Below are positions 6,126 through 45,120 of a stretch of 64,000 nucleotides of DNA, piece by piece (positions within the stretch are counted from its first letter, which is position 1; the number at the start of each line of letters is the position of its first letter). Both the position numbers and the translations under genes were made by a program. Origin of the DNA: Kudoa neothunni (taxonomy: Eukaryota; Animalia; Cnidaria); contig OZ199838.1 in assembly GCA_964304625.1 (NCBI GenBank), positions 16,475,469-16,539,468 of the forward strand. Direction: 5' to 3'. The notes beneath the pieces are model-generated. The model did not search any database and was not told where the DNA came from. It saw only the letters and a program-made list of their open reading frames with translations.

Positions 6126-6329
6126 AATTCAATAACAAAACAAGTTACCTTAAATGCTTTCGAAAATGTTAACAACCATCAACTTAAATTGATAACTCGT
6201 TATTTTTAATTCTTATGATAAAAAATATTAATTATCTCTGTACGTGTATGCTAGGAAAAATTAATTTAAAAATATAAAATTTGCAATTTTTTAATCATAT
6301 GAATATGTCTAAAATTGTATTTATTGACG

Positions 6330-6415: not shown

Positions 6416-9356
6416 ATGAAATCTCAATTAGTCTCGGTTAGTTTGCTAATTGCATTTTCATGTAATTTAATTACATTATTTACATTATTAATTTCTTGAA
6501 GATATTAATATAAATACCGCTGCTGAAGAGAAAACAGCAGTCCAAACTTCTACAAAAATACTTTCGTACGACATTGTAGACGGCAAAGTTCAATTAGTTT
6601 TGACTGGGTCAGATTATGTTACAAGTACGAAAAAATGCCTCATAAAAAAGGAGAACGATGATGGAAATGGATTTGGTCAGATGAGTACTTGTGCAAGCAG
6701 CACTGAAACAGGCAAATGTGTACGTGCTTGTAAAGGAGATGACAACAAAATTGAGTTTAATGTGCTTTCACCCAGAACGAAATTTATTTATGTCTTTTCT
6801 GGGATGGAACCCGAGTCAGTAAAAGGAAAAGATAAAGGAGGGGATGTTTTTGGACTTGCTATTCGTAATTTAAATAAAATTATTCTTTTTTAATTGAAAA
6901 TAGCGCTTTTGGTGAATCCATCAATAACAGTGTCCATAGATACTAATACGAAAAAATTAAAATTGGCAGCCAAGACATGTGAAAGAGTTGACTGTCCCAT
7001 TTTTTATAAAGGTATTCAATATGTGGCCGGTACAGTAGGAGCAAACTGCGATTCTGATAATAGCAACAACCAAGTTGATTTTGACCTTATGATTCCTCAT
7101 TATGAGATGATATGCACGAATTACCCCAGCTTCTTCTATCAAATGCCAAATTCGTATATGAAAGAAAATATTGACATATACAAACCACAATACTACGTTA
7201 CCTACAAGAAAGGTGACACTGATAAGAAAAATTATATCTTAAAATTCACCAACTCATTTCCTTCCGAAATATGTTTATTCAGTATTAAGGATGCTTCAAG
7301 TGCTTCTGAAGGGCCTACGAAGATATACACATCAATGTGCGGAGGAGGAACTGATAAAAATTGTTTTGCACCTTGCGATACTGTTGAATTAACACTAGCT
7401 GAGTCTAAACCAATCGTCGAAATATTAATTCAGACTAGATATCACGATTTAAAAGAAAGCAATGGGAAAATTGAGGGTTATGCAGGAAAAAAATATGGTA
7501 TGATTTTTATTGACAAAATTAAGATATTCATTTATTATAGTTATCGAAGAGCCTGCCGCTCCGAATACACTTTTTAGTGCACAAACAGATGTAGGGATTA
7601 CGCTTAGCCCTTCTACATACAAATCAGGCACCAGTTCAGTAAAGTTTAGTTCGTGCGCTTTGAAGTATTTCCCTGCAGATAAAATCAGGAAAGTCGAAGG
7701 AGTAATTCCAAATTGCCAAACCAGTGGGGCTTGCGGAGAAGATTGTTCAACACCTTCTGTTATAGTGGGGCTGACTGCAGGGAAAGCATACATGATTGAG
7801 ATCACTCCAGAAAGCATAAATAATCATGAAAATTTTAAAGAATACCTGTTTTTCAGAACAAGTAAGGAATATATTCATAACACTCATTAAATTATTTTTA
7901 GAAGAATCTGGTACATTAAACTTCGCCGACACAGCACCCACACCAACCGACGTGACTGCTGCAATTAAAGCGGTTGCTGGTGACGTTGGATCAGCAACAA
8001 CTGAACCGACCTGTTCCTATTACGTCAGTATAAAAGATAAAAACACGTTCGTAGAAGCAGAATGTGAAGACAGCAATCCATGTAGAGGATTTTGTAAAGA
8101 CACCAAGAAGTTGATAAATCTAAACCCTAAAACAAACTACGATATTAAAGTTATTTCACACAAAGACTATGGAATCAAAATATTTAAAAATATTCCAACT
8201 AGTAAAAAAATTTGAATATAACCTAATATAAATTATATTTGTTAGCTTGGTCAACCATGACTCTTTCCCATAAATTCCTGGATAAAGGGTTTAAAGTGGT
8301 TGGAACTTTGACATCCGTTTATCCACAAGCAACATGTCACTATAAAATAAGAGAAAAAGACGGAGAGACTCTAAAAGATGTTTATTCCTGTCCAGAAGTT
8401 GTTCCTCCGTCGCCGCCGGTCGGTCCAGTCACTGAAGATATTGCTGCTCCTCCTACACCTACTCAAACTCAGGAAACGACAGAATCTAGGCTGGTCAACG
8501 TTTCAAATTTGTCTGGAATAAAAATAGCAAGATCTGGCAATGTAGAAGCAACTGATGCCACACCCACTGAACCCACTACTACTCAGTCTAGGTTTCCACC
8601 TTGCAATATACCGCCACTTTGCAGAAATATAGTAATTAGTGATGGTTATGAGGCTAATAAAGAATACCAAGTATTGGTGACGGCTGTAGGCCGATCAGAG
8701 GAAGTTACAATCAATATTCCTAAAAGTTCTATAACAAAATTAATATAGAAATTTTCTAAATTGTCATATAAATATAGATTCACTCCCAGAACTATCTCAG
8801 GATACAAACAAACAAATTACGGTAGTTATCGAGAGAGTAGGAGATACGTTAAAAATCACGTCATTGCTTCCAAAAGAAAAGGATGATAATTCAGTATGTC
8901 GATGGATACTGAGAGACATCACTGATGTTTCCCAACGAATAGTGAAAAAATGTGATTCCAGTAGAAGTAAAGTTTGCAAACTTCCAACTTGCAGATCATT
9001 CACTATTGAGGATGTAAGTGATACCAATGATTATCATTTAACACTTATTCACTCTCGAGATCCCAATGTTAAAGGTGTTGGAATAATAAAACGAGGTAAC
9101 TATTAATTAATAATAATATCAATTATTATTATTATTATAATTAATAATTTAGGAGAGACCTCCAATCAATCCAGGTACAATTTATATTTTAATGTTTAAT
9201 GTATTACATTTTTAGGGCGAGCACCTCAATGTATTAAATTTTGGGTTAATATGTTGGGATAAGTTTTCATTTAGGATTGTTGGAATCATTGTTCCAGTCG
9301 CTATTGTTATTATAGGAGTTGGATTTTACTTTGGCTATATGAAGAATAGAGGATAA
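6416..9356 (+). CDS. Cys-rich FN3-like multi-module type I membrane protein, copy 1 (846 aa, 10 exons)
   Basis: Exons 6416-6461, 6502-6864, 6904-7497, 7541-7861, 7902-8201, 8246-8725, 8778-9095, 9153-9174, 9216-9230 and 9275-9356 sum to 2541 nt (847 codons), with all introns GT-AG. N-terminus MKSQLVSVSLLIAFSY is signal-like; C-terminus is IVGIIVPVAIVIIGVGFYFGYM-KNRG*. Confidence 0.88.
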
Positions 9357-9525
9357 TTTCGATTAACTCAATTAAGCATTTGGAACAAATTAAATTATTT
9401 TTTATTAATTTATAATATCATAATTAAATATATTATGAATATTTCTCAAATTATTTACTATAAATTATTCATTTTATTTGAAATATTGTTAGTATAATAT
9501 TCGAAATTGATTGAATTTACTTAAA

Positions 9526-9700
9526 GGTAGTGGCTATATCTCAGGTACCTGATAATCAGACCGCGCTTAGGCCATACCTCAGGGAATGAATATCTCTTAA
9601 TACATTTCACATATTTTATTCATATTTTGCATATTATCTAATATTTACCTAATTTATTTTTCCGTATGTTTTGGAAGATATGGAAGAATAAGAAATTTTT
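9526..9700. mobile_element. Solo TIR of the MULE-like family at 19151 and 38591
   Basis: GGTAGTGGCTATATCTCAGGTACCTGATAATC..GGAATGAATATCTC matches the left TIR at 19151 and 38591. No partner TIR was found nearby. Confidence 0.65.
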
Positions 9701-14270: not shown

Positions 14271-14360
14271 TCAACATCATTTTTCATAATCATTATTAGA
14301 ATCAATTATGTTTTCGTATGCCGTTGTGAATGTGTGAACACTAGGTCAAATAACCGATTA

Positions 14361-14581: not shown

Positions 14582-15500
14582 TAATTGGAATTTGGAACGT
14601 CAATGGGTTTTCGTCCCTTTTTCGGCACTATACTATATTGCTTATATTTCTTGACTCCCGCAACGGTTTGAACTATTTTGAAAAAATATTATTTATATAA
14701 CCTTTACAAATTATAATTTAGCTTGAGAATTTTTAATTTGTTATTTCTACGAAGTTACTGTTCTATTAGTACCTCAGTGTACCGTAATTACTATATAAGT
14801 ACATAATCTCAAAATATGTAAATTCATAATTGAAATTTAATTCTTAATTAAATTTAAAATGAATTAATAAATTATAGATTACGATATAAACTCATTGACG
14901 AATTATTAAAATTCTTAGAGAGGCATTGATGAGGGACCGAAAACCCCGAATGGGTTAATGTAAAAGGCACACAATAAACTTTCCTGGGAAAAGAATAAGC
15001 TGATAGTGCTGGTCCAAGAAATGTCGCAAAAATGGGAATTGGTCTAGAAAATAGTAGAAAAATAAGCCAAATATCGAAATTATATTATTTGTTGATATTT
15101 TAATATTATAAAATCATTAAAATCTCATTTAATTATAATGTATAGGAATTATATGCCTATATAATTTTTTTTAATTTTATAACAAAATTTTTAAGGTCAC
15201 CAAGTATCAACGAATTCAATTCTAAAACAAATAATTTTAGATGCTTTCGAAAATGTTAACAACCGTTAACTTAAATTGATAAATCCTAATTTTTAATTCT
15301 TAGGGTGAAAAATATTAATTATCTATGCATTTATCCCAGGGAAAATTCATTCGAAAAATAAAAATTTGTAATTTTTCAATCATATGAATATGTATAAAAT
15401 TGTATTTATTGATGTATTGAATCCTATCATTAGATTCATATGAATGATAATAATTGAATCAAATATGCAATATAATCTGATTTACTCTATGTATCACAAA

Positions 15501-18460
15501 ATGAAAACTCAGATATTCTCAGTTAGTTTATTGATTGTATTTTCATGTAATTCTATATATATATATATATATATACGTTTATTAATTTATTAAATTTGTT
15601 TAGTTATTAATATAAATAGTGCCGTTGAAAATAAACAAGCACCTCAAACTCCTACAAAAATACTTTCGTACGATATTGTAGGAGGAAAGGTTCAATTGGT
15701 TTTGACTGGGTCAGACTATATAACGGATTCAAAAAAATGTCTCATAAGAAAAGAGAAGGATGATGGAAATGGATTTGATCAGATACATCCCTGTGTAGGT
15801 AGCGATGAAACCAATGGGAGAGACAAATGCGTACGTGCTTGTGCAGGAAATGACAACACATTAGCATTTAATGTGCTTTCACCCAGAACAAAGTTTATCT
15901 ATGTATATTCCGGAGTGCAGGCTTCAGAAATTCTAGCCAAAAATAATGGCGGAGAGGTTTTTGGACTAGCTATTCGTAATTTAAACAAAATTATTCTTTT
16001 TTAATTTGAAGTAGCGCTCTTGGTGAATCCAAAAATCACGATATCCACAGATGCATCATCGAAAAAATTAACGCTTGCAGCCAAGACATGTAAAAATGTT
16101 GACTGTCCCATTTTTTATAAAGGTATTCAATACGCGACTGGTGCAGGAGGGGCTGCTTGTGAAACTGATAACACCGCCAACCAAGTTGACTTTGACCTTA
16201 TGATTCCTCACTACGAGATGATATGTACGAATTACCCAAGCTTCTTTTATCATATGCCAAATCCGTACATGAAAGAAAATATTGACATATACAAACCCCA
16301 ATATTACGTTACTCACAAAAATGTTGACACTAAGACAAATTATGTCCTGAAATTTACCAACTCATTTCCTTCCGAAATGTGTTTATTTAGTATTAAGGAT
16401 GCTTCAACTGATGCTAGGGAACCTACTAACGAATACGCATCAGTATGTGGAGGAGGAACCGATAAAAACTGTTACGCACCTTGTGATAATGTTGAATTAA
16501 CACTTACTGTTTCCAAACGAATCGTTGAAATATTAATTCAGACTAGACATCATAATTTAGATCAAAACAATGGAAACATTGGGGGCTATAAAGATAAAAA
16601 ATATGGTATTATTTTTATTAAGAAAATGTAGATATTTATTTATTATAGCTATCGATGAGCCTGAAGCCGCAAATACACTTTTTAGTACGCCAACAACTAT
16701 AGGGATTACACTTAACCTATCTGCATACAATACAGCTTCTGTCAGCCCAAAATTTGGTACATGTACTTTAAAGCATTTTCCTGCTGATAAAATCAGAAAG
16801 ACTCCAGAGGATGTTTTGCAATGCAACGATACCGATTCTTGTGAAAGTGTTTGTGCTACTCCTTCTACTATAAAGGGGCTGACTGCAGGGAAAGCATACA
16901 TAATTGAGATCACTCCGACAACCATCAGTAATCCAGAAAATTTTAAAGAATACTTGTTTTTCAGAACAAGTAAGGAATATATTCATAACACTCATTAAAT
17001 TATTTTTAGAAGAATCTGGTACATTAACCTTCGCCGACACAGCACCCACACCAACCGACGTGACTGCTGCAATTAAAGCGGTTGCTGGTGACGTTGGATC
17101 AGCAACAACTGAACCGACCTGTTCCTATTACGTCAGTATAAAAGATAAAAACACATTTGTAGAGGCAGAATGTGAAGACAGCAACCCATGTAGAGGATTT
17201 TGTAAAGACACCAAGAAGTTGATAAATCTAAACCCTAAAACAAACTACGATATTAAAGTTGTTTCACACAAAGACTATGGAATCAAAATATTTGAAAATA
17301 TTTCAACTAGTAACAAAATTTTAATTTAAGCTAATATAAATTATATTTGTTAGCTTGGTCAACCATGACTCTTTCCCATAGATTCCTAGATAAAGGGTTT
17401 AAAGTGGCTGGAACTTTGACATCCGTTTATCCACAAGCAATATGTCACTATAAAATAAGAGAAAAAGACGGAGAGACTCTACAAGATGTTTATTCCTGTC
17501 CAGCAGTTGTCCCTCCGTCGCCACCGGTCAGTCCAGCCATTGAAGATATTGTTGCTCCTCCTACACCTACTCAAACTCAGGAAACGACAGAATCTAGGCT
17601 GGTCAGCGTTTCAAATTTGTCTGGAATAAAAATAGCAAGAGCTGGCAATGTAGAAGCAACTGATGCCACACCCACTGAACCCACTACTACTCAGTCTAGG
17701 TTTCCACCTTGCAATATACCGCCACTTTGCAGAAATATAGTAATTAGTGATGGTTATGAGGCTAATAAAGAATACCAAGTATTGGTGACGGCTGTAGGCC
17801 GATCAGAGGAAGTTACAATCAATATTCCTAAAAGTAACATATAAAGGAATTAATATAGATATTTTCTAAATTGTCATATAAATATAGATTCACTCCCAGA
17901 ACCATCTCAAGATACAAACAAACAAATTACGGTAGTTATAGAGAGAGTAGGAGATACGTTAAAAATCACGTCATTGCTTCCAAAAGAAAAGGATGATAAT
18001 TCAGTATGTCGATGGATACTGAGAGACATCACTGATGTTTCTCAACGAATAGTGAAAAAATGTGATTCCAGTAGAAGTAAAGTTCGCAAACTTCCAACTT
18101 GCAGATCATTCACTATTGAGGATGTAAGTGATACCAATGATTATCATTTAACACTTATTCACTCCCGAGATCCCAATGTTAAAGGAATTGGAATAATAAA
18201 ACGAGGTAACTAACAATTAATAGTAATATTAATTATTATAATAATTAATAATTTAGGAGAGACCTCTAATCAATCCAGGTACAATTTATATTTTAATGTT
18301 TAATGTATTACATTTTTAGGGCGAGCACATCAATGTATTAAATTTTGAGTTGACATGTTGGAATAAGTTTTCATTTAGGATTGTTGGAATCATTGTTCCA
18401 GTCGCTATTGTTGTTGTAGGGGTTGGATTTTACTTTGGTTATATGAAGAATAGAGGATAA
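15501..18460 (+). CDS. Cys-rich FN3-like type I membrane protein, copy 2
   Basis: Same 10-exon structure as copy 1 (MKTQIFSVSLLIVFS..GFYFGYMKNRG*). Intron 1 contains a (TA)n tract. There is a Cys-to-Arg change at 18085-18087. Confidence 0.87.
15554..15575. repeat. (TA)11 microsatellite in intron 1 of copy 2
   Basis: Read directly from the sequence; absent from the other four copies. Confidence 0.9.
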
Positions 18461-21400
18461 CTTTGATTAACTCAGTTTAACATTTGGAACATATTACATT
18501 ATTTCCTATTAGTTTATAATTAAATATATTATAAATATTTGTAAATTTATTTACCAATAATTATCCATTTTATTTGAAATATTGTTAGCATAATATTCAA
18601 TATTAATTTAAGTCTATCAAGAAATAAATAAATGAATATTGACAGAATTAGTTGTGATAATTTTATCATTCAATTATAAATGAAATCAATTGTATAATAA
18701 TTAATAGGATAATTTAAAGCTTAAATTTTTTTCACGTAAATAATTTACAAGTTTATTCCTAAGGATTATTTTAACAACACAAATACACTAAATTAAGATT
18801 TGTGTGTGATATCTCAGTAAAATTAGCATTAGTCTAGTTTTTATGTATTTTTATAATCCATTATAGATCTTGAATATTTTATTACAAAATTATTGAAAGA
18901 ATTTAATTCGTAATTTTTGAAGTTTCATTTTTCGGACGAAATTACGCTTGGTACATACATGCGTGCTGTCTGTTGATTGATATCACAATTCCAAAATATA
19001 TCAAAAAATTAGAAAATAAAACGATCTTTGAATTCTATAATAAATTAAAAAAGAATTAGGATAGTTCAATTTCATAAGTTTAAATCAAGACCGAACCTAA
19101 CTACCTTTCCGAATTGAATAACAGATTTTTAAGCATTGTAATTATTTGATGGATGTGGCTATATCTTAGGTACCTGATAATCCTGTCGCGCTATGACCAT
19201 ATTTCAAGGAATGAATATCTCTAAAACCACTGCATATATTTTGTTCAGATTTTAAATTTTATCTAATATTTACTTAATTTAATTTTTCGTAAGTATTAAA
19301 AAAATTTGCAGAAGAATAAGTTTTCAGTAGTGCAACCATCCTTAGTCTATCAATATCAAGGTGTAATTATATTATATTTTTAAATTTTTCGGTAAAAAAA
19401 GCATATTTACTTTTTGAATTATTTAATATAAATAATTAATTCTTCGCTTAAAGTAATTTTAGCGTCCATTGTATACCTTCGGGTTAGAATGTCAAAGATG
19501 AATTCTAGCATGTTTATATATAGAATATAGTTTATTTCCTGCGAAGATCTTATATTGTCATAATTAAATGTGATTAATTAAAATTTTGGTTATCTCAAAC
19601 ATTACAATTGGCCTCCAACAAATTTTTTGTATTCATTGGTGGGAAAGACATGAAATGAGGTTTTTAATGTGGGTCCTATAATAGAAAATAATGAATAAAA
19701 TGTTTTAGTTATTATTCACAGAAAAAAAATCTTGGAAATAAAAAAATTCGAACAGAAGTTAAAATAAAAACTAATTTTTTGATGGTGATGTTTAATCATA
19801 CTGAATTTTGTGAGGAACTTTTGAGTAAAGCTATAAGGTCCCTTAGTCCACTGGGAAAAATAACTAAGAATCATGATGACGTTTATATCGTTCGTGTCCC
19901 CAAATAAATTTGATTATTTGTTGACAAATATAACATTTACAATTTAATATAGTCGAAAATGTGTGAAATTACAGAAAAAGGAAATCTTTTATGATTTAAT
20001 TTTTGATAGTGAGAAAGAAGTGTCTCCTGTTGATTTGATAGGGATGCCACATATCAACAAGATAAAACCCGAAACAAACAAATGAATTAAAACCCCACAA
20101 GGAACGAATAAATAATTGCATTAAAGCTTTAAATAGAATACAACAACAATTATAAGTTAAAATATTATTATTGTTGGATTTTTAAACCCCAAAATTCCAT
20201 CGAAAGTAAAGCCAATTGTAGGGCTAGAAATAATTTATTTGTGAACAGTTGCGAATATAAAGATATATAAAAATAATTTGTGACATCAATAAATCGAAAA
20301 ATACAATATGACATATTAAGTTTATTTTCTGTATGTGGAAGCTGTTATATTTTATTATTCCTAACTCACATGATCAAGTCAACATATATTCCATATCTTT
20401 TAGAAATACAAAATAACACGAGAAATAAGAGAATGAAAATTTTAATATTTTGTTGTCTTATAAATGATAAATTGTTTATTTATAGAAATTTTCAAAACTA
20501 GAATAGCCGTGCAAATATTGTTTGGAACAAAAGAATGCTCCAGCTACAGATTATCAGACGATTTCTCGCTTTAGAGCGAAATTATTTGGCACTTGCGCAA
20601 GAGGTACCATCGATCCTGATGTGGAGGGATGGTTTTAGAGATATTCATTCCTTGATATATAGTCAGAGTGCGATAGGATTATCAGGTACCTGAGATATAG
20701 TCACTCCCTTATTTATTCTAACCCTCGTGTAAAAAGGGGTCCAAATAGGGTCGAACGATATTAGGATGTATTTTCTTTGACTAATTTTGAATATCCAGTT
20801 CTAATGTTTTTCTTATTTTTCTATATAACATAGATCTATACAAAAAAGTTATCAAGATAACTTTTAAATTTCTTAATCGAATATTAAAATAAAAAAATCT
20901 TCCAAAGAAAATGGCGTCTTCATTGATTCAAGATGTTTATTTAAAATTTTTGAACAGAAAGACGTAATTATAATATTATTAAGAGAACAATTTGTTGTAA
21001 AAATTATTTTATGCCTAAAATGAATAACCCAAAAATATACACTCAGGTGCGGATATACATATTTTTTGTCAGGTCATGGGTTGTTTTGAAAATAAAGGCG
21101 GTAGTATTGACATCCATGACTATGATACACCAAGTCTGTTTTATTTAACAGAAACTATGGATCAATATATAAAGAAGATTTTGTGTTGGTCGATACTGAT
21201 GACTCCCTTATTTATAAAAATGGACGTTCGTAGGGCTAGACGAATCCATCGAAAACGCAGACGCCTCCTGAAAATATGATGTGTTTTAGTCAGGATGTGA
21301 TTCATTATAACATCCAAAGGATTATTAAAAAAAGGTTGCCTTTGAGTTCTCTGAAGCGTTAAGAATAAATAAAATAATCACGAATGCAAACATAAATGCA

Positions 21401-22687
21401 TCGAATTGAAAATATCAGGAAAACTATACGAGTAAAAATTAATATTGCAGAATGATAACAAAAAATGAGATTTATTATGTTTACTCGTTCCCAAGATAAA
21501 AAAACTGACCTAGAAGATGACTTGTGTATGGCTACTTGCTGCAAAGAATATTTAGTTATTCGTGCAAAAGCTTTGACTTATCATTTTTCGATTTACGTTG
21601 TTTTTTGAACTCGCGTATAATTCACTTGAATTATTTTAACTAACATGTAATGGTAGCATTCTCATCCTTTTTTAACAACAATTATCTTAATACAAAGCCG
21701 TACTTCATGTATCAATATCCCCTTATATTTTAATTTCGTCGCTATAATATTCTTTTAATTTTATGGTTTAAAATAATTATTCAAAGATCTTAAATGTGGC
21801 AGGGGTTACTTTCTAGTTTATTACATTGATGTACTCTGTAAAATTAAAGTTATTTGAAATTCGAATAATCATAAAAACCCGTAGAATATAATAAGTATTA
21901 TAATTAAACTATTACTAAAAGTTAGAGATTTTTTATGACAATATGCAAAGTATTTAAAATCAATCAATTCAATTTTAATGATTCTCCAATTTTATTAACT
22001 TTGGGCTTTACCGCGTATATACGAGAAAATATTTTATATGAAATTATCTTTAAAAGGTACGTGTCTTGCAGCAAAACTTTTTTGGAATGTGTAAAAATAT
22101 TATTACGATAAGTTTATGCAAAAAACACTAAGATCCATATGGGCTATTTTACTCGGGGGTATCCGATTTTGGTATACTCGAACGGTAAAGGTAATGGAAC
22201 GTCATAAGCTTTTCTGTGATAAAAGTACGCGGATAGCGCTTGCAAAGGAATCAACGACATAACTGGGAATTAATCACCACAAATAAAGGAATAATAGGTC
22301 AAATATCGAAATTATATTGTTTTTTGTTTGTTCAAATATTGTAAAATTATTAAAATAACATTTAATTACGTTGTATAATAAAAGTTTTAGTCATCAAAGC
22401 TTAACGAATATAATTATAAAACAAGTAAGCATAGATGCGTTCAGAACTCTTAAAACTGTTTAATTAAATTCTTTCATCCTTATTTGTGAGAATTATGGTA
22501 AAAAGTATAAATTATAAATTTATCAGGAAAAATAAATTCACAAAAATCAAAGTATGCAATTTTCCAACAATATCAATATATCACATTGTATATATCGATG
22601 TATCAAATCCTATTGTTATGTTCATATGAATATCAATAGTTAAATCGAAATATACAGTTTAATCTGATTTACTCTCTATACCAAAAA
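18461..22687 (+). repeat. Spacer between copies 2 and 3, duplicated as the spacer between copies 4 and 5 (37859-42159)
   Basis: Collinear similarity across the spacer apart from one replaced block; 20632-22075 appears identical to 40062-41505 (offset 19430). Confidence 0.9.
19151..20708. mobile_element. Non-autonomous MULE-like element
   Basis: TIRs GGATGTGGCTATATCTTAGGTACCTGATAATCC / GGATTATCAGGTACCTGAGATATAGTCACTCCC, with degenerate 9-bp TSD TTATTTGAT / TTATTTATT. Confidence 0.8.
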
Positions 22688-30490: not shown

Positions 30491-30502
30491 CGTTTGTAGC
30501 TA

Positions 30503-33500
30503 CAGTCGAGACTGAATATTGCGTAATTCGAGATTTTCAACGTTATCCTTTAAAGAGAGAAACTTAGTTTTTTGAAATTGTTATTATCTTATTGTGATAT
30601 AAAAATATTTGTTAACAAAAAATTTTAAAAAATTTCATTAATACAAAAATTCTCGTTATTGAATGGAAATTTTTTATTGCGTGGCTATTAGGCATAGCGT
30701 GATTCGTTATTGCGGGGTTTTTTGTGGACAATTGGTTAAAATCAGATAATGTTTTTTCATTGTATCCCGTGAACAACGCAATATTTCAGAGAAAATGGAA
30801 ATCATCCATTACTACAATTCAATAAAAACGTTGAAGGGTTCTAAATCAATGACAATATCCAAGTTTAAATTGAGTGGTATAATAGTCTTCTATTAAATAT
30901 TAATGTAAAATCACATTTAAGGTCATTCAACACTTGAGAGAATTCTTTCGCACGAAGATAAATTCAAAAATACAGATATTGAAAGTAAAGGAAGAGATTT
31001 TCGGTAGACAGATTCAAAAATATAGACGATGAAATGTATGATTGGTTTGTTAAACAACGGTGGAATGGTAACGTTCCGTCGGGAGATGCCATTATCAAAA
31101 AGGCTTCCTATATCGCAAATGAGAACAAAGTTTCCAATTTTAAGGCCAGCAGGGGATGGCTTTCAGGGTTCAAGTCTAGATATTGGATAGTTTTCAAAAA
31201 GTTCCATGGCGAGGCTGCGAGTGTAGATAATGTATCTGTCGACTCGTGGATTATTGAACACATTGATTTGATTGGAGCATATAATCCAAAAGACGTTTTA
31301 AAATCGACGAAACTGTTCTTTATTATGAGCAGTTACATAACATTGGTTATGTTTTAAAGGATGAAGTTCGAATATAAGGGAAAACATATCCAAAAAAGGG
31401 TGACTGTTTTGCTGTCCTCAGCTTTAAGTGGGGATAAGTTCCCATTAGTTGTTAGCGGAAAATTTCAAAATCCTAGATGTTTTAAAAGAGTCAAACACCT
31501 CCCATGTGAATATTATGCACAAAAAAGTGCATGCATGGATGACGTCTAGTATATTTATAGAAATAATGAAAAAGTTTAACTGAAGGATGATAAATCAGAA
31601 TAGAAAAGTCTTAATTTTATTGGATCAATGTCCAGGCCACCCAAAAAACATTGATTGATTTGAAAATATCAAATTTTTTTTCTTACCCAAAACTACAACT
31701 AATATTTAACAACCTCTTGATTCAGGTATCATTTGCTGCCTTAAAAGCAGGTACAAAAGTTCAATGACCTAGCGAATGGTTTTATGCGAAGATTCTGTCA
31801 TAAAAAAATATACATTGCTTGACTCAGTGATAACACTAACTAAATGTTGGGAGATTATTCAGCCGCAAATTATTATTAATTGCTTTAAAAAATCAATAAT
31901 ATTTGGAGGTATTAAATAATATTATGATAATAAAGTTATTATCAGTTTATAGACCAAGAAGATATGAGAGAGATACCTCAAATCAGCAACTGTTCTCAAA
32001 GTAATATTTAACTTATACCGGGTTTTACATCCTAATTCGGACACTAGGACAATCAAATATAGACTTAACGCTTAAAAAATGGTAGGTCGTAAGGTGCATA
32101 AAGTTGAAATGAGCGAAGCTGCTGTATACATGGTAGTTTTTGAAGGTTATTCTCAATCTGAAGTGTCAAGAAGTCTTGGAATACATAAGAGTACACTTTC
32201 TGTTATAATAAACAAATATTATGACAAAGAGGTCTCATGCAAGGATCCAAGGGGCGGAGCAAAACATGTCAAAATTACCGACGAAATAAAAACCCAAATT
32301 TTGAAATTAATAGAGGATGACTGCACGATTACTTTCCAAACAATTGTTGACAAAATTGGCGTGTAGGTAAATGTAACAACTGTATGGGATGGCTCAAAGC
32401 GATGAAGATATCATTTAAAATGGAGAGAGCTATACCTAAGAGTAGAAACTCTCTCGAAGTCAAACAAGAAGGGAAACTGTATGCTGACTGGTATTCAAGC
32501 CTCTTAATAATCAATAGACAGGAGATATACAAAAATGATATTTGTAGACGAAAGCCCTTTTTCATTACATCTGCTACGCTCACATGGCCGCTCCCTTATA
32601 GGAACCACCATCAACCCTGTAGATGAGAATAGTAGAGGTAAAAATGTGTCAATTATACTCGCTGTTGATGCCATCAGTGTAATGCATTTTTGAGGCAATA
32701 CAGGGAAGTGTGAACAGTGATATATTTACTGAGTTCCTTCGAAAAGTACAACAAATACTGGTTGATGGAAATTATGTTATCGTAATGGATAACATAAGAT
32801 TCCACCATTCGAACAGAGACTTCTATGATGAATATTCATAAGAAATTCGTTATCTACCTCGGTATTCACCTTTTCTGAATCCGTGCGAAGAGGTGTTTTC
32901 CAAAATCAAAAATGGTGTTCGAAAACATGGGCTTATCAGAGGAGCAAACGACTTAATCGACAGAATGAAAACATCCACCAACAACGTAACTGAAGCTGAC
33001 CTCAAGGCTTATTTTCAACATTCTGAATCCTGTACGGGCAGATGTCACACCTTAAGTGATATTGAACGAAATTAGGCCAATGTCATTACAATTATTTTAT
33101 TCATCGATGTTTTTTAGCGCAATATTTTAAAATACTGGATTAAAATGCCTTTTCAAAAAGGGGTTATTAAACTTATAATGCAATATAGTAAAATTATTAA
33201 GACGAGTACGGATTTGGATGTAAAACCCGTTACCAAATTAATTTTTTCTGGATGAAATCGAAGATTCAGACAATGTGTTTGATGACGATTATGAAGAAAC
33301 ATGTGAAGAAGAAAATAATGAGAACTTATTGCCCATAGGTGACGAATCTAACGATAGCGAGTCAATCATTGAAGACATTAAAATTTCAATTAAACAAATG
33401 AAAAACGTAGTGAGAGTTCTGAGGGGAACTTTCACTAAAGAAGATCCGTCGAGATTGTTTGATTTACATCCCATAATGGACCGAGTTTTAAAAATATCAA

Positions 33501-33749: not shown

Positions 33750-34911
33750 TATTTTCAATTGTCTAAAATTCTTCAGACATATCATAAATCTCTTCTATTT
33801 CATACAATAAATTTTATTTTCTATTACTATTGGCTTTGATATGTGTTTTTAATTTCGCACACAATCAATTTCTTCTTTTGATGGAACTTTATCCTTATGT
33901 ATCTACCTATCATCTATCTATCAGGCACGTGGCGTCAGAGTAAGCAGCGCCTGCCTCAGAGTACAAAACAACAACAAAAATTTTCTTATACAAATAGTTT
34001 TAATTTAATATTGTTATATTAATTTACCTTCTTATTTTGCATAAAAAATTGAAAACTTGGATAATCTTTTGATAGCATAAGCACGGATTAGCGCTGCCCT
34101 CAGGCCACCCTTGTGACTCTACAGGCGCATCACAACCTAGCACGTGTCGCATGTGCCAGTCAACACACGGGGTTCTGTTCTATTGACCCCTGGGATCATA
34201 ATCTTCGCTGTCCCTCGAATACTTTCGATTCCATGTTCGAAATTAAAATGTGTTTACACTCTGATTGACAACTTTTATTCGTTTTTTTCAGTTTCAAGTT
34301 AATAAATTTTTTATAAATTATTTATAGGAACACCAGATATTACACTTTACGGAATAAACCATTTTTAATGATTCAACTCTAACCGTTAATCCCTGGTTTG
34401 TTTACTTTAAAAATAACCGTAGGAATCATGAACAATAGTGAATATTTTAAAGCATTTTTAAAACTTTCGTACAAAGGAAAAATTAAAATTATTACTGATG
34501 GTAGACCTCCTCTAGAGCTTCCATAATTACAACAAAAGATAGATTGGATTACCAGAACATTCCAAACTATCTGGTACAACAAAAAAGAATGGATATGTGG
34601 TTGTATCACAACAAATAGACTTTTTTTGGTTTTCATGCATGCTTTTCTCAGCATCCCTCGAAAGTGTCTGGGTGAATGAAGAGTATTATGACTTAAAAAA
34701 CTTTTGACAGCTTCAAAACTCGTGACGATCTAATATCTAATACTGGGGTAAAATCATTGAGTGCTTACTCAAAGCAACTATCTACGCCATGTGCCTAATA
34801 TATATAACATTGTATTTATTGATGTATTAAATCCTATTGTTATGCTCATATGAATACCAAGAGTTAAATCGAAATGTGCAGTATAATCTGATTTGCTCTC
34901 TGTACCACAAA

Positions 34912-37858
34912 ATGAAAACTCAGTTAGTCACAGTTAGTTTATTAATTGCATTTTCATGTAGTTTATTTACATTATTTATTTTATTAATTTCTTGTAGATA
35001 TTAATATAAATACCGCTGCTGAAAATAATCCAACAGCCCAAGCTCCTACAAAAATACTTTCGTACGACATTGTAGGAGGAAAGGTTCAATTGGTTTTGAC
35101 TGGGTCAGATTATGTAACGGATTCAAAAAAATGTCTCATAAGAAAGGAGAAGAATGATGGAAATGGATTTGATCAGATAAGTACTTGTATAAGCAGCACT
35201 GAAGAAACAGGAAAATGTGTACGTGATTGTGCAGGAAATGACAACACAATAGCTTTTGATGTGCTTTCACCTAGAACAAAATTTATTTATGTTTTTTCTG
35301 GAGCGAGTACTGAAACAATAAAAAATAGTAATACTGGTGGGGATGTTTATGGACTTGCTATTCGTAATTCAAATAAAATTATTCATTTTCTTTAATGAAA
35401 ATTAGCTCTATTGGTGAATCCAAAAATCACAATATCGATTGATGCTACTTTGAAACAATTAACGCTTGCAGCTAAAACTTGTCCAAAAGTTGCCTGTCCC
35501 ATTTTTTATAAAGGTATTCAATACGCGACTGGAGCAGTAGGGACTGCTTGCGATTCTGATAACAGCAATAACAAAGTTGATTTTGACCTTATGATTCCTC
35601 ATTATGAAATGATATGCACAAATTACCCTAGCTTCTTTTATCATATGCCAAATCCGTACATGAAAGAAAATATTGACATATACAAACCCCAATACTACGT
35701 TACTTACAAGAAAGGTGACACTGAAAAGAAAAAATATATTCTAAACTTCACCAACTCATTCCCTTCCGAAATTTGTTTATTCAGTATTAAAGACGCTTCG
35801 AGTGCTGCTACAGGATCTACAAAGAATTATGCATCAGTGTGCGGAGGAGGAACTGACAAAAAGTGTTTTGCACCTTGTGATACTGTTGAATTAACACTGG
35901 CTGAGTCTAAACCAATCGTCGAAATATTAATTCAGACCAGATATCATAATTTAGATACAAGCATTAGCAGCATTGAGGGCTTTAAAGGGAAAAAATATGG
36001 TATTATTTCTATTAAGAAGACGTAGCTATTCATTTATTATAGCTATCCAAGAGAATGACGCTACGAATACACTTTTTAGTACACAAACGAATGTAGGGAT
36101 TACACTTAACCCCTCTGCATACAATTCAGCATCTACCGGACCAAAATTCACCACATGTTCATTAAATCATTTTCCTGCTGACAAAATCAGGAAAACCAAT
36201 GGAGAAACAACAAATTGCCAACCCAGTCAAGCTTGCACTCAGACTTGTGCAACACCTTCGGTTATACAAGGGCTGGACGCAGGAAAAGCTTACATAATTG
36301 AGATTACTCCGGCATCTATAGCTGATCACACGGATTTTAAAGAATACCTGTTTTTCAGAACAAGTAAATAATATTCATGTCGTTTATTTAATTATTCTTA
36401 GAAAAATCAGATGGATCAAACTTCGTCGACACAGCACCCACACCAACCGACGTGACTGCTGCAATTAAAGCGATTGATGGTGACGTTGGATCAGCAACAA
36501 CTGAACCGACCTGTTCCTATTACGTCAGTATAATAGATAAAAACACATTCGTCGAAGCCGAATGTGAAGACAGCAATCCATGTAGAGGATTTTGTAAAGA
36601 CACCAAGAAGTTGATAAATCTAAACCCTAAAACAAACTATGATATTAAAGTTATTTCACACAAAGACTATGGAATCAAAATATTCAAAAATATTTCAACT
36701 AGTAAAATAATTTTAATTTAAGCTAATATAAATTATATTCTTTAGCTTGGTCAACCATGACCCTTTCCCAAAGATTCCTAGATAAAGGGTTTAAAGTGGC
36801 TGGAACTTTGACATCCGTTTATCCACAAGCAATATGTCACTATAAAATAAGAGAAAAAGACGGAGAGACTCTACAAGATGTTTATTCCTGTCCAGCAGTT
36901 GTCCCTCCGCCGCCGCCGGTCAGTCCAGCCATTGAAAATATTTCTGCTCCTCCTTCACCTACTCAAACTCAGGAAACGACAGAATCTAGGCTGGTCAGCG
37001 TTTCAAATTTGTCTGGAATAAAAATAGCAAGAACTGGCAATGTAGAAGCAACTGATGCCACACCCACTGAACCCGCCATTACTCAATCTATGTTTCCACC
37101 ATGTAGCAAACCACCACTCTGCAGCAATATAATAATTAGTGATGGTTATGAGGCTAATAAAGAATATCAAGTATTGGTGACGGCTGTAGACCGATCAGAG
37201 GAAGTTACAATCAATATTCCTAAAAGTAACATATAAAGGAATTAATATTGATATTTTCTAAATTGTCATATAAATATAGATTCACTCCCAGAACTATCTC
37301 AGGATACAAACAAACAAATTACGGTAGTTATCGAGAGAGTAGGAGATACGTTAAAAATCACGTCATTGCTTCCAAAAGAAAAGGATGATAATTCAGTATG
37401 TCGATGGATACTGAGAGACATCACTGATGTTTCCCAACGAATAGTGAAAAAATGTGAATCGAGTAGAAGTAAAGTTTGCAGACTTCCAACTTGCAGATCA
37501 TTCACTATTGAGGATGTAAGTGATACCAATGATTATCATTTAACACTTATTCACTCCCGAGATCCCAATGTTAAAGGAATTGGAATAATAAAACGAGGTA
37601 ACTAACAATTAATAGTAATATTAATTATTATTATTATTATAATTAATAATTTAGGAGAAACTTCGAATCAATCCAGGTAAAACTAATAAAATAATGTTTA
37701 ATGTAATATATTTCTAGGGCGAGCACCTCAATGTATTAAATTTTGAGTTGATATGTTGGAATAAGTTTTCATTTAGGATTGTTGGAATCATTGTTCCAGT
37801 CGCTATTGTTATTGTAGGGGTTGGATTTTACTTTGGTTATATGAAGAATAAAGGATAA
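34912..37858 (+). CDS. Cys-rich FN3-like type I membrane protein, copy 4
   Basis: Same exon structure (MKTQLVTVSLLIAFSY..GFYFGYMKNKG*). Confidence 0.87.
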
Positions 37859-38590
37859 CTTTGATTAACTCAGTTAAACATTTGGAACATTTACATTATT
37901 TTTTATTAGTTTATAATTTTATAATTGAATATATTATAAATATTTGTAAATTCATTCACCAATAATTATCCATTTTATTTGAAATATTGTTAGCATAATA
38001 TTCGATATTAATTTAAGTCTATAAAGAAATAAATAAATGTATATTGGCAAAATAAGTTGTGATAATTTTATCAATCATTTATGAATGAAATTAAGTTTAT
38101 AATATTTAATAGGATAATTTAATGCTTAAATTTTTTTCACGCAAATAATTTACAAGTTTATTCCTAAGGATTATTTTAACAACACAAATACACCAAATTA
38201 TGATTTGTGTAATATCTCTAGATAAGTTGAATTAGTTTAGTTTTTATATACTTTTGTAAACCATTATAGATATTGAGTATCTTATTCCAAAATGATTGAA
38301 AAAATTTAATTCGTAATTTTCGAACCTTCATTTGTCGTACGAAATTACACGCGGTACATATATGTGTGCAGTCTACTGATTAAGGGTAGATGATTGGGTT
38401 TAATAAGCCACTGATTGATGTTGGAAATTCCAAAACCTATCAAAAAATTAGAAAATAAAACGATCTTTGAATTCTACAATAAATTAAAAAAGAATTAGAA
38501 TAGTTAAATTTCATAAATGTTAATCAAGACCAAACCTAACTACTTTTCTAAATTGAAAAACCGATTTTTTAAGCATTGTAATTATTTGAT

Positions 38591-40138
38591 GGATGTGGCT
38601 ATATCTCAGGTACCTGATAATCCTGTCGCGCTATGACCATATTTCAAGGAATGAATATCTCTAAAATTACTGCATATATTTTTTTCATATTTAACATATT
38701 ATCTAATATTTACTTAACTTAATTTCTCATAAGTATTAAAAATATTTGCAGTTGAATAAGTTTTCAGTAGTGCAACCATCCTTAGTCTATCAATACTTAA
38801 GTGTAATTATATTATATTTTTAAATTTTTCGGTAAAAAAAGCATATTCACTTTTTGAATTATTTAATATAAATAATTAATTCTTCGCTTAAAGTAATTTT
38901 AGCGTCCATTGTATACTTTCGGGTTAGAATGTTAAAGATGAATTCTAGCATGTTTATATATAGAATATAGTTTATTTCCTGCGAAGATCTTATATTGTCA
39001 TAATAAAATATGAATAATTAAAATTTTGATTATCTCAAACATTACACATGGCCTCTAAAAATATTTTTATATTCATCGGTGGAAACACGTATGAAATAAA
39101 GTTTTTAAATGTTGGTCCTATAATAGAAAATAATAAATAAAATGCTTCAGTTAATATTTGCAGGAAAAAACTCTTGGAAACAAAAAAATTCGAACAGAAG
39201 TTAAAATAAAAACAAATTTTTTGATGGTGATGGTTAATATTACTGAATTTTGTGGGGAACTATTTTATAAGGCTATAAGGTCCCTTAGTCCACTGGGAAA
39301 AATAACTAAGAATCATGATGACGTTTATATCGTTCGTGTCCCCAAATAAATTTGATTATTTGTTGACAAATATAACATTTACAATTTAATATAGTCGAAA
39401 ATGTGTGAAATTACAGAAAAAGGAAATCTTTTATGATTTAATTTTTGATAGTGAGAAAGAAGTGTCTCCTGTTGATTTGATAGGGATGCCACATATCAAC
39501 AAGATAAAACCCGAAACAAATAAATGAATTAAAACCACACAAGGAACGAATAAATAATTGCAATAAAGCTGAAAATAGAATACAACAACCATTATTAAAA
39601 GTCAAAATATTATTATTGTTGTTGGATTTTTAAACCTCAAAATTTCATCGAAAATAGAAACAATTTTAAGGCTAGAAAGAATTTATTTGTGAACAATTGT
39701 GGATATAAGGATATACAAAAATAATTTATGACATCAATAAATAAAAAAATTCAATATGACATATTAAGTTTATTTTTTGTATATGGAAGCTATTATATTT
39801 TAGTATTCCTAACCCACATGATCAAGTCAACATATATTCCATATCTTTTAGAAATACAAAATAACACGAGAAAAAAAGAGATTGAAAATTTTAATATTTT
39901 GTTGTCTTATAAATGATAATTATACTTAAATATTGATGGACTCAGAATGGTAGTTGCTCTACTGAAAATTTATTCTTCTGCAAATTTTTTTTATACTTAC
40001 GAAAAATTAAGTTAAATAAATATTAGATAATATGCGGAATGTGAACAAAATATATGCATTAGTTTTAGAGATATTCATTCCTTGATATATAGTCAGAGTG
40101 CGATAGGATTATCAGGTACCTGAGATATAGTCACTCCC
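38591..40138. mobile_element. Non-autonomous MULE-like element (duplicate of 19151-20708, ~210-bp TIRs intact)
   Basis: Same termini and TSD as 19151-20708; the right TIR extends inward to ~39930. Confidence 0.8.
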
Positions 40139-42159
40139 TTATTTATTCTAACCCTCGTGTAAAAAGGGGTCCAAATAGGGTCGAACGATATTAGGATGTA
40201 TTTTCTTTGACTAATTTTGAATATCCAGTTCTAATGTTTTTCTTATTTTTCTATATAACATAGATCTATACAAAAAAGTTATCAAGATAACTTTTAAATT
40301 TCTTAATCGAATATTAAAATAAAAAAATCTTCCAAAGAAAATGGCGTCTTCATTGATTCAAGATGTTTATTTAAAATTTTTGAACAGAAAGACGTAATTA
40401 TAATATTATTAAGAGAACAATTTGTTGTAAAAATTATTTTATGCCTAAAATGAATAACCCAAAAATATACACTCAGGTGCGGATATACATATTTTTTGTC
40501 AGGTCATGGGTTGTTTTGAAAATAAAGGCGGTAGTATTGACATCCATGACTATGATACACCAAGTCTGTTTTATTTAACAGAAACTATGGATCAATATAT
40601 AAAGAAGATTTTGTGTTGGTCGATACTGATGACTCCCTTATTTATAAAAATGGACGTTCGTAGGGCTAGACGAATCCATCGAAAACGCAGACGCCTCCTG
40701 AAAATATGATGTGTTTTAGTCAGGATGTGATTCATTATAACATCCAAAGGATTATTAAAAAAAGGTTGCCTTTGAGTTCTCTGAAGCGTTAAGAATAAAT
40801 AAAATAATCACGAATGCAAACATAAATGCATCGAATTGAAAATATCAGGAAAACTATACGAGTAAAAATTAATATTGCAGAATGATAACAAAAAATGAGA
40901 TTTATTATGTTTACTCGTTCCCAAGATAAAAAAACTGACCTAGAAGATGACTTGTGTATGGCTACTTGCTGCAAAGAATATTTAGTTATTCGTGCAAAAG
41001 CTTTGACTTATCATTTTTCGATTTACGTTGTTTTTTGAACTCGCGTATAATTCACTTGAATTATTTTAACTAACATGTAATGGTAGCATTCTCATCCTTT
41101 TTTAACAACAATTATCTTAATACAAAGCCGTACTTCATGTATCAATATCCCCTTATATTTTAATTTCGTCGCTATAATATTCTTTTAATTTTATGGTTTA
41201 AAATAATTATTCAAAGATCTTAAATGTGGCAGGGGTTACTTTCTAGTTTATTACATTGATGTACTCTGTAAAATTAAAGTTATTTGAAATTCGAATAATC
41301 ATAAAAACCCGTAGAATATAATAAGTATTATAATTAAACTATTACTAAAAGTTAGAGATTTTTTATGACAATATGCAAAGTATTTAAAATCAATCAATTC
41401 AATTTTAATGATTCTCCAATTTTATTAACTTTGGGCTTTACCGCGTATATACGAGAAAATATTTTATATGAAATTATCTTTAAAAGGTACGTGTCTTGCA
41501 GCAAACTTTTTGGAATGTGGCAAAATATTATGCCAATAAGTTTATACAAAAGACTAAGGTCCATATGGGCTATTTTACTCGGGGGTGTCCGATTTTGGTA
41601 TACTCAGATGGTTAAAGTAGAGGAACTTCATAGGGTTTTCTGTGATAAAAATACACGGATAGCGCTTGCCAATGAATTAACAATATAACTGGTAATTAGT
41701 CACCACAAATATAGGAAAAATAGGTCAAATATCAAAATTATATCGTTTCTTCTTTGTTCAAATATTGTAAAATTATTAAAATTAAAATAACTTTTAATTA
41801 CACTGTATAGAAATTATTTATAAGTGTGTTATTTTATTTTTCACCTGTATAGGAAAATTTTTAGCCACCAAAGTTTAACGAATTTAATTATAAAACAAGT
41901 AAGCTTAGATGCTCTCAAAAATGTTAAACGTTTACTTAAATTCTTTAATCTTTATTTTAGAGAATTATGGTAAAATGTATAAATTATAAATTTATCAGGA
42001 AAAATAAATTCACAAAAATCAAAGTATGCAATTTTCCAACAATATCAATATATCACATTGTATATATCGATGTATCAAATCCTATTGTTATGTTCATATG
42101 AATATCAATAGTTAAATCGAAATATACAGTTTAATCTGATTTACTCTCTGTAGCAAAAA

Positions 42160-45120
42160 ATGCAAACTCAATTAGTCTCGGTTAGTTTATTGATTGCATT
42201 TGCATGTAATTTGTTTATATTGATTATTTTATTAAATTCTTGTAGTTATTAATACAAATCCTACTACGGAAAATAAACTAGCACCCCAAACTCCTACAAA
42301 AATACTTTCGTATGACATTGTTGAAAGTAAAGTGTTGTTGGTTTTGACCGGATCGGATTATGAAACGGACTCGAAAAAATGCCTCATAAGAAAAGAGAAC
42401 GATAGTGGAAATGGATTTGATCACGTAAGTACATGCGAGAATAGAGATACACAGGTTGAGACAGGCAAGTGTGTACGTGCTTGTGCAGGAAATGACAACA
42501 CATTAGCGTTTAATGTGCTTTCACCCAGAACAAAGTTTATCTATGTATATTCCGGAACAGATGCCGCACAAATTCAAAATAGTAATAACGGTGGGGATGT
42601 TTTTGGACTTGCTATTCGTAATTTAAATAAAATTATTCTTTTTTAATTGAAAATAGCGCTTTTGGTGAATCCATCAATAACAGTGTCCATAGATACTAAT
42701 ACGAAAAAATTAAAATTGGCAGCCAAGACATGTAAAAGTGTTGAATGTCCCATTTTTTATAAAGGTATTCAATACGCGGCCGGTACAGTAGGGACTGCTT
42801 GCGATTCTGAGAACAACGATAACAAAGTTGATTTTGACCTTATGATTCCCCACTACGAGATAATATGTGCGAATTACCCAAGCTTCTTCTACCAAATGCC
42901 AAATCCATATATGAAAAAAAATATCGACATATACAGACCCCAATACTACGTTACTTACAAAAAAGATGACGCTGATAAGAAAAATTATATCCTAAAATTC
43001 ACCAACTCATTTCCTTCCGAAATATGTTTATTCAGTATTAAAGACGCTTCGAGTGCTGCTACAGGATCTACAAAGAATTATGCATCAGTGTGCGGAGGAG
43101 GAACTGATAAAAAGTGTTTTGCACCTTGTGATACTGTTGAATTAACACTAGCTGAGTCTAAACCAATCGTCGAAATATTAATTCAGACTAGATATCATAA
43201 TTTAGATACAAGCATTACCAGCATTGAGGGCTATAAAGAGAAAAAATATGGTATTGTTTTTTAAAGAAAATGTATCTATTCATTTATTATAGCTATCGAA
43301 GAGACTGACGCTACGAATACACTTTTTAGTACACAAACGGATGTAGGGATTACACTCAACCCTTCTCCATACAACACAGCCACCGGTACCAATTCATTAA
43401 AGTTTGTTACGTGTGATTTAAAGCATTTTCCTGCCGATAAAATCAGAAAGACTACAGGGGATGTTTTGCAATGCAGCGATAATAACTCTTGTGGGCAGGC
43501 TTGTGAAACACCTTCTGTTATACGGCAGTTGACTGCGGGGAAAGCATATATAATTGAGATTACGCCAACAGCCATAGCTGATCACACAGATTTTAAAGAA
43601 TACCTGTTTTTCAGAACAAGTAAGGAATATATTCATAACACTTATTAAATTATTCTTAGAAGAATCTGATTCATCAAACTTCGCCGACACAGCACCCACA
43701 GCAACCGACGTGACTGCTGCAATTAAAGCGGTTGCTGGTGACGTGTTAAAAACAGACGCAACTGAACCGACTTGTTCATATTACGTCAGTATAGTAGATA
43801 AAAACACATTCGTCGAAGCCGAATGTGAAGACAGCAACCCATGTAGAGGATTCTGTAAAGATACTAAGAAATTGATAAATCTAAACCCCAAAACATACTA
43901 TGATATTAAAGTTGTTTCACATAAAAACTATGGAATCAAAATATTTAAAAATATTCAAACTAGTAAAAAAAATTTTAATTTAAGCTATTATAAATTATTT
44001 TCGTTAGCTTGGTCAACCATGACCCTATCCCAAAGATTCCTAGATAAAGGGTTTAAAGTGGCTGGAACTTTGACATCCGTTTATCCACAAGCAACATGTC
44101 ACTATAAAATAAGAGAAAAAAACGGAGAGACTCTAAAAGATGTTTATTCCTGTCCAGAAGTTGTCCCTCCGCCGCCGTCTGTCAGTCCAGCCACTGAAGA
44201 TATTTCTGATGCTCCTCCTTCACCTACTCAAACTCAGGAAACGATAGAATCAAGGCCGGTCAGCGTTTCAAGATTGCCTGGAATAAAAATAGCAAGAACT
44301 GGTAATATAGAAGCAACTGATGCCACACCCACCGAATCCACTACTACTCAATCTAAGTTTCCACCATGTAGCAAACCACCACTCTGCAGCAATATAATAA
44401 TTAGTGATGGTTATGAGGCTAATAAAGAATACCAAGTATTGGTAACGGCTGTAGGCCGATCAGAGGAAGTTACAATCAATATTCCTAAAAGTAATATATA
44501 AAGGAATTAATATAGATATTTTCTAAATTGTCATATAAATATAGATTCACTCCCAGAACCATCTCAAGATACAAACAAACAAATTATGGTAGTTATTGAG
44601 AGAGTAGGTGATACGTTAAAAATCACGTCATTGCTTCCTAAAGAAAAGGATGATAATTCAGTATGTCGATGGATACTGAGAGACATCACTGATGTTTCTC
44701 AACGAATAGTGAAAAAATGTGATTCCAGTAGAAGTAAAGTTTGCAGACTTCCAACTTGCAGATCATTCACTATTGAGGATGTAAGTGATACCAATGATTA
44801 TCATTTAACGCTTATTCACTCCCGAGATTCCAATGTTAAAGGAATTGGAATAATAAAACGAGGTGACTAACAATTAATAATAATATCAATTATTATTATT
44901 ATAATTAATAATTTAGGAGAGACCTCTAATCAATCCAGGTAAAATTAATATTTTAATATTTAATGTATTATATTCTTAGGGCGAGCACCTCAATGTATTA
45001 AACTTTGAGTTGATATGTTGGAATAAGTTTTCGTTTAGGATTGTTGGAATCATTGTTCCAGTCGCTATTGTTATTATAGGAGTTGGATTTTACTTTGGTT
45101 ATATGAAGAATAGAGGATAA
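42160..45120 (+). CDS. Cys-rich FN3-like type I membrane protein, copy 5
   Basis: Same exon structure (MQTQLVSVSLLIAFA..GFYFGYMKNRG*). Intron 5 (43963-44007, 45 nt) is in frame and stop-free. Confidence 0.87.

Follow-up and report, generated by a model that had tools for sequence, protein, structure and literature searches.

Patchwork genes in a tandem array of predicted membrane proteins of the myxozoan Kudoa neothunni, probably formed by short-tract gene conversion

Concerted evolution is well known from tandem gene families of animals, such as MHC and KIR, and ectopic gene conversion in such families is a textbook mechanism. The subject here is a tandem gene family in the myxozoan Kudoa neothunni. 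The stretch of DNA that was analysed, from here on called the window, is 64,000 nt long and covers positions 16475469-16539468 of contig OZ199838.1 on the forward strand. It holds five copies of a gene for a predicted membrane protein. These five genes are patchworks, made, with a probability of roughly 0.8, by repeated short-tract ectopic gene conversion among tandem paralogues. The mechanism is already known; the family is very large and undescribed.

The likeness to MHC and KIR is one of pattern. Paralogues share short non-reciprocal tracts, introns and silent sites are homogenised, different stretches of the gene support conflicting trees, and old lineages persist in a variable part next to a conserved part that has been homogenised. 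There is no sequence kinship however: this is a myxozoan membrane family, FN3-like, whose domain copies run into the hundreds and belong to no Pfam family.

Another likeness is to Plasmodium var, Trypanosoma VSG and Babesia ves1. Here too there is a large archive of arrayed paralogues, for candidate surface proteins, whose segment types are re-assorted by short tracts, with a variable outer part and a conserved membrane-proximal part, and apparently frameshifted copies (L003 and L004, described below) that share tracts with intact ones. Unlike those systems, the Kudoa family has a ratio of non-synonymous to synonymous differences per site (pN/pS) of about 0.4 and not above 1. It also sits in an animal, a cnidarian, and its genes have nine short introns.

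Among myxozoans, the surface candidates of Sphaerospora molnari include Giardia-like VSPs, RIFIN/STEVOR-like and ETRAMP-like proteins, and it has been proposed that myxozoan immune evasion rests on these (10.64898/2026.02.11.705288). The same work reports that antigenic variation has been observed in myxozoans, and states that its mechanism is unknown. The S. molnari VSPs contain more than 10% cysteine and carry CXC/CXXC motifs (10.64898/2026.02.11.705288). The Kudoa proteins differ from these and other Giardia-type VSPs: they contain 3.3% cysteine, no CXXC motif was found in them, and they have a different tail. Pfam, word-index and exhaustive profile searches found no sequence relation to the S. 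molnari candidates. The family goes unmentioned in the K. neothunni genome paper (PMC12239612).

The window contains five units of ~3.1 kb, at about 6300-9500, 15408-18608, 22586-25786, 34800-38000 and 42061-45261. Whole-unit identity is 86-89% in every pair. Which pair is closest depends on where one looks: in windows of 100 nt, the closest pair switches about fifteen times along the unit. Each unit carries an intact gene on the forward strand. Copy 1 (6416-9356) encodes 846 amino acids in 10 exons, placed by reading frames and splice sites. Exons 1-5 are at 6416-6461, 6502-6864, 6904-7497, 7541-7861 and 7902-8201, and exons 6-10 at 8246-8725, 8778-9095, 9153-9174, 9216-9230 and 9275-9356. 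The other genes are copy 2 (15501-18460, 848 amino acids), copy 3 (22688-25639, 851 amino acids), copy 4 (34912-37858, 847 amino acids) and copy 5 (42160-45120, 853 amino acids).

These five are part of a longer array. A search of the K. neothunni genome (40,260,978 bases in 4 contigs) found at least 13 close copies on the same contig. Eleven of these stand in a row at 16.443-16.561 Mb, five inside the window and six outside. Spacing is ~7.1-7.3 kb inside a two-gene unit, and 9-30 kb between other neighbours. The five window copies were aligned with nine copies from outside the window, which are referred to by L numbers, and the gene model of copy 1 was projected through this 14-copy alignment. 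All nine introns are bounded by GT..AG in 14/14 copies. An open frame of 845-853 codons is found in 10/14, including all five in the window. L004 is broken by one single-base deletion in exon 3, L003 by two single-base insertions in exon 3, at base runs, and L009 by frame-shifting insertions in exons 4 and 6. L005 (OZ199838.1 16547447-16551050) has nine +1 insertions, several of which lengthen short base runs, and zero deletions. For L003, L004 and L005 there are two readings: pseudogenes that go on trading tracts with the intact genes, or local consensus errors of a low-coverage assembly.

The case for conversion starts with the tracts that copies share. Copy 1 at 6840-6980 and copy 5 at 42593-42733 are identical over 141 nt, as is L004. 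This tract has 42 concordant polymorphic sites (global p<=0.0002), and covers the end of exon 2, the whole of intron 2 (6865-6903) and the start of exon 3. Copies 2 and 3 share an exact tract of 125 nt (16236-16360 and 23409-23533) with 30 concordant polymorphic sites, where L001 is off by 1 site and every other copy by at least 13. An exact 83-nt tract, also with 30 such sites, is common to copy 4 (35774-35856), copy 5 (43025-43107), L004 and L006; L007 is off by 3 sites here, and the remaining copies by at least 12. Copies 3 and 5 have a 119-nt tract (23713-23831 and 43185-43303) that contains intron 3. It has 2 mismatches, and is probably an older event. These two copies also have an identical tract of 144 nt (22802-22945 and 42274-42417). 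Copies 1 and 2 share 200 nt across intron 4 (7847-8046 and 16955-17154) with 1 mismatch, and L003 is identical to copy 1 throughout that tract. They further share 194 nt exactly (8534-8727 and 17642-17835), where the next nearest copy has 13 differences.

The initial annotation, made from the letters of the window, had already pointed to five of these matches. All are there. On the raw window, 6841-6980 matches 42594-42733 with 0 mismatches, the tract of copies 2 and 3 and that of copies 4 and 5 likewise have 0, and copies 1 and 2 show 0 differences across intron 4. The match between copies 3 and 5 holds with its 2 mismatches in 119 nt, and intron 3 differs at 1 position.

Most tracts are common to sets of copies rather than to pairs. 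These sets are copy 1, copy 5 and L004; copies 4 and 5 with L004 and L006; copies 2 and 3 with L001; and copy 1, L003 and copy 2. Outside each set, at least 12 differences separate the next nearest copy. This means that each segment exists as a few discrete types. Exact tracts in the variable 5' half of the gene mostly fall at 50-280 nt. Of those that reach at least 50 nt there are 80; their median length is 66 nt, and the longest has 277 nt. At least one such tract is shared by 42/55 array pairs.

Recombination was measured on an alignment of the five window copies, with 302 parsimony-informative and 861 polymorphic columns. The pairwise homoplasy index (PHI), GENECONV-type and breakpoint tests are in-house versions. 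All ten possible splits of two copies against three are supported, by 14-41 informative sites each, and one tree can hold only two of these splits. PHI is 0.27-0.44 against 0.54 in permuted data (z -22 to -26, p<=0.0005, with 0/2000 permutations as low). The Hudson-Kaplan minimum number of recombination events is 73, compared to 168 with permuted sites. The GENECONV-type scan finds at least 10 fragments of 25-43 consecutive concordant sites at global p<=0.0002, with as partners copies 3-5, 1-5, 2-3, 4-5, 1-2 and 1-3. In permuted data, by comparison, the 99.9th percentile of the concordant run lies at 22 sites, and the longest run reaches 24. When breakpoints were scanned by parsimony across 15 topologies, the alignment fell into 9 segments (penalty 5) or 17 segments (penalty 3) whose best trees differ; the score was 475, and 200 permutations never went below 541.

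Forty simulations were also run without recombination, on the maximum likelihood tree and with the estimated site rates held in place. In these the PHI z averages 0.03 and never falls below -3.1, and the longest concordant run is at most 26, compared to 30-43 observed. Rate heterogeneity and homoplasy therefore do not yield the signal. The earlier statement that no single tree fits is borne out by these figures, and the absence of a significant recombination signal, which would have refuted it, was not what the tests showed.

The partners in the tracts clash with the block duplication of copies 2 and 3 as copies 4 and 5, as the initial annotation also said, and the duplication itself is real. 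A two-gene block of copy 2, spacer and copy 3 (15387-25774) is duplicated as 34797-45246, with copy 4, spacer and copy 5. The corresponding parts are 15387-20470 with 34797-39919, and 20632-25774 with 40062-45246.

A copying model was used to paint each window copy as a mosaic of the others in the 14-copy alignment. This gives 11-21 segments per copy, with changing donors. Patches of the form A-B-A, where the same donor returns, are frequent, and many are under 150 nt. Copy 5 is painted mostly with an L004-like background, broken by patches of copy 4, L002 and copy 3. Copy 4 has a mostly L006-like background. In these two copies, the patches that interrupt the L004 or L006 background are 13-194 nt long. 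That partners change along the gene is thus confirmed, but several of the partners named from the window are better explained by copies outside it, given that copy 5 is mostly L004-like and copy 4 mostly L006-like.

Such mosaics might also come from birth-and-death evolution with repeated unequal crossing-over, with no short-patch conversion at all. The array has features that fit this. The two-gene unit is repeated at variable spacing, the boundary of the block duplication coincides exactly with the 5' end of a gene, and the whole-gene affinities of copy 5 with L004 and of copy 4 with L006 cut across the two-gene unit structure. However, a crossing-over leaves one junction per event, and each 3-kb gene of this array shows 11-21 of them, together with the many A-B-A patches of less than 150 nt. 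Gene length, exon structure and array order have meanwhile been kept. Crossing-over as the sole process is therefore considered improbable, at something like one chance in ten.

The introns are informative on the question whether identity reflects copying or function. The closest pair differs from intron to intron: copies 3 and 5 for intron 1, 1 and 5 for intron 2, 3 and 5 for intron 3, 1 and 2 for intron 4, 2 and 3 for intron 7, 1 and 2 for intron 8, and 3 and 4 for intron 9. Introns 2, 4, 8 and 9 have 0 differences in one pair each, and 3-11 in most other pairs. For introns 2-4 the other pairs have 5-11 differences per about 40 positions. Intron 1 has up to 29 differing columns, and the version in copy 2 is 17 nt longer.

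Silent sites behave in the same way. Counts of pS and pN were made on the spliced sequence. Within tracts pS is 0, against 0.3-0.6 around them. The two halves of the gene also differ: pS is 0.26-0.40 in the 5' half (locally up to 0.6) and 0.06-0.15 in the 3' half. This means that silent divergence is 3-5 times lower in the 3' half, at the same pN/pS of about 0.4 (0.33-0.46 in the variable half). Judged from these counts, the contrast between the halves appears to be one of age, that is, of how recently each was overwritten, and not one of constraint.

The competing idea is that strong protein or RNA constraint keeps these stretches identical, and that nothing was copied. It can draw on protein segments that are indeed highly conserved, with pN 0.03-0.04 in codon windows 195-239. 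Yet those same segments still have a pS of 0.37-0.50; the codon window 195-224, for example, has pS 0.50 and pN 0.03. A conserved protein with high pS means that protein constraint does not produce nucleotide identity here. Identity is moreover limited to particular pairs or sets, and includes introns and silent sites; across these columns the remaining copies show 12-30 differences. Because the tracts contain whole introns and silent sites without differences, copying and not protein constraint explains the identity. The preference for gene conversion over protein constraint, voiced before on the strength of the identical introns, is upheld: tracts cross exon-intron borders into introns and silent sites that are identical, in surroundings that have diverged. 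Selection in place of copying can be put close to negligible.

Conversion does not stop at the genes. An exact tract of 1,444 nt without an open reading frame (ORF) lies between copies 2 and 3 at 20632-22075, identical to 40062-41505. Outside this tract, the duplicated block is 75-96% identical. Four two-gene units carry the 1,444-nt sequence, always at the homologous position, and it occurs nowhere else; in the two units beyond the exact pair, identity is 91%. Since the tract is exact, the process reaches beyond coding DNA, and since it is confined to homologous unit positions, it points to conversion and not to a transposon. It looks like a very recent long conversion. A transposon was considered as the source of the identity and rejected, as only the first ~80 nt are a dispersed repeat.

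That ~80-nt repeat, which is possibly like a miniature inverted-repeat transposable element (MITE), flanks genes at 20632-20715 and, in reverse, at 9530-9605. A search of the own genome finds about 30 copies on all three chromosomes, at 75-92% identity. The 12-kb spacer between copies 3 and 4 holds transposase remnants at 31034-31354 and 32079-32363. One of the remnants has a Tc5/pogo-type helix-turn-helix (HTH) domain (Pfam PF03221, E 4.5e-13). The second is an ORF with an HTH domain that has only weak matches to transposase HTH families. The stretch 31006-32019 has a 97% identical copy 49 kb downstream, near 80.4 kb, beyond the window.

A number of observations weigh against gene conversion as the full explanation. 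Conversion and repeated unequal crossing-over are not formally separable at every junction. Tract sharing does not fall significantly with distance along the array (rho -0.19, p 0.17). The GC content of third codon positions is not raised in the more homogenised half, and there is no sign of GC-biased conversion. The assembly rests on about 7x HiFi k-mer coverage, with haplotigs purged (PMC12239612). The k=31 contigs that cover copy 5 are 100-350 nt long and break off at shared tracts, and so offer no phasing and no confirmation from single molecules. The insertions in L005 may be decay or low-coverage consensus errors.

The last three of these points bear on the possibility that the mosaics are an artefact, in which error correction, assembly or haplotig purging blended reads that came from different paralogues or haplotypes. 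For the published assembly, an infected yellowfin tuna was sequenced with HiFi reads, which were assembled by hifiasm-meta and then scaffolded with Hi-C. The result comes to 40.2 Mb with a scaffold N50 of 12.0 Mb, and has a mitochondrial circle besides its three chromosomes (PMC12239612). Diploidy is assumed for the fish stage (PMC12239612). Parasite coverage is below the recommended depth, purge_dups and manual curation were applied, and L005 has its nine single-base insertions; the reads gave no phasing.

Four sequencing runs contain the locus. They are from one sample, probably the source fish, and consist of k=31 contigs. No run recorded as RNA contains the locus, and two raw-read runs (one DNA, one RNA) had 0 reads from the parasite and are no test of the mosaics. 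One read-derived contig, with a depth of 5, has G and A at 42734 and 42739, right after the tract of copies 1 and 5. This is the flank of copy 1, the only aligned copy with a G at the column of 42734. The contig joins the shared tract to the flank of copy 1, and the reads therefore hold the same tract beside two different right flanks, which speaks against an assembly error. Patches of 50-280 nt are also far shorter than HiFi reads, and the paralogues are 12-20% different around them, so reads should stay apart. Tract ages vary, from 0 to 2-3 mismatches. In addition, neither the window nor the 70 kb that flank it contain gaps or long near-identical duplicates. There are zero N gaps in the 134 kb around the window, and the only self-matches of at least 97% over at least 400 nt in this 134-kb array are the 1,444-nt intergenic tract and one transposon copy. 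False haplotypic duplication was rejected on this ground. An artefact as the cause of the mosaics is rated very improbable.

Short-tract gene conversion would then work on the array as follows. A tandem array of at least 11 paralogues would be overwritten piecemeal by non-reciprocal copying of short tracts, the likely route being repair of a DNA break with another family member as template. The 3' half, with the membrane-proximal domains, the linker and the membrane helix, would be homogenised often. The 5' half would keep old, discrete sequence types at each segment. Conversion may re-assort these types, and each paralogue would thereby come to carry a particular set of loop variants on the FN3-like scaffold that all of them share. 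In scale, the events resemble germline evolution of a family, and nothing in the genes indicates programmed or somatic switching.

As to the product, the protein has 846-853 amino acids and a hydrophobic N-terminus, a signal peptide by its sequence features. The strongest hydrophobic stretch, a single predicted membrane helix, starts at residue 819-821 of copy 1 and is followed by a tail of 6 amino acids. The product is a candidate membrane-anchored surface protein. Directly before the exon with the membrane helix are micro-exons of 22 and 15 nt, among introns of 41-57 nt (9096-9274 in copy 1, and the same in all copies).

Pfam, database searches and fold prediction used single exons. Pfam gave nothing over threshold on six exon translations; the only match was fn3 on exon 5 (E 0.036, 14.7 bits against a cut-off of 25). 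A PDB profile search had no matches, and look-alikes in the ESM Atlas all scored under 0.9, which is uninformative. Exon 3 (197 amino acids) was modelled from a family alignment of 47 sequences, with a predicted local distance difference test score (pLDDT) of 82.5. The model is nearly all beta, in two beta-sandwiches. Foldseek matches it to IL-7R, gamma-c, gp130 and IL-17RA at E 3e-4 and template modelling (TM) scores of 0.3-0.4, and VIA-align gives Z 6-7 to FN3 pairs. Exon 3 may therefore be said to resemble tandem FN3 or cytokine-receptor modules in this model, at the level of fold only and with weak scores.

The variable patches lie mostly between predicted beta-strands, and the difference between strand and coil is not significant (p 0.39). 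pN/pS is 0.37 in predicted loops (coil) and 0.26 in strands. No positive selection was found, as pN/pS is below 1 in either half, in loops and in strands. The suggestion that conversion would shuffle variable loops combinatorially thus stands in part: the tracts do re-assort loop variants, but nothing shows that this shuffling is selected or programmed (pN/pS about 0.4).

The family is far larger than the array. Of 456 first-look candidates for the exon-3 domain pair, at least 150 genomic copies were scored at E<1e-58, on all three chromosomes. Outside K. neothunni, a word-index protein search with exon 3 returned one unnamed metagenome fragment only, which has the same exon layout. An exhaustive profile search of 1.84 billion representatives returned only 18 short unnamed fragments. 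Ten of the 18 were looked up, and all of these are singletons from ENA or Logan contigs. Two fragments are from one Logan run, on a contig that also carries the eukaryotic genes for SNF5 and ribosomal protein S14. The exon-sized relatives in this run are probably from another myxozoan. Given that there are relatives in the assembly of another organism, the family is not confined to the K. neothunni genome.

The array is a clean case of conversion homogenising one half of a gene and leaving old sequence types in the other. Myxozoans are economically relevant animal parasites of fish, and K. neothunni lives in fish muscle. Antigenic variation has been seen in some myxozoans with its mechanism unknown, and this family is therefore worth testing: a very large, undescribed family of predicted membrane-anchored proteins, with outer domains re-assorted by short tracts, is a concrete candidate. 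It is a long shot that the family forms a variable surface coat of a metazoan parasite, its loops recombined by segmental conversion among hundreds of paralogues, some of them apparently frameshifted. The selection counts lend this reading no support. If true, animals would have a counterpart to the var or VSG mosaics of protozoa, and antigenic variation in myxozoans a possible basis.

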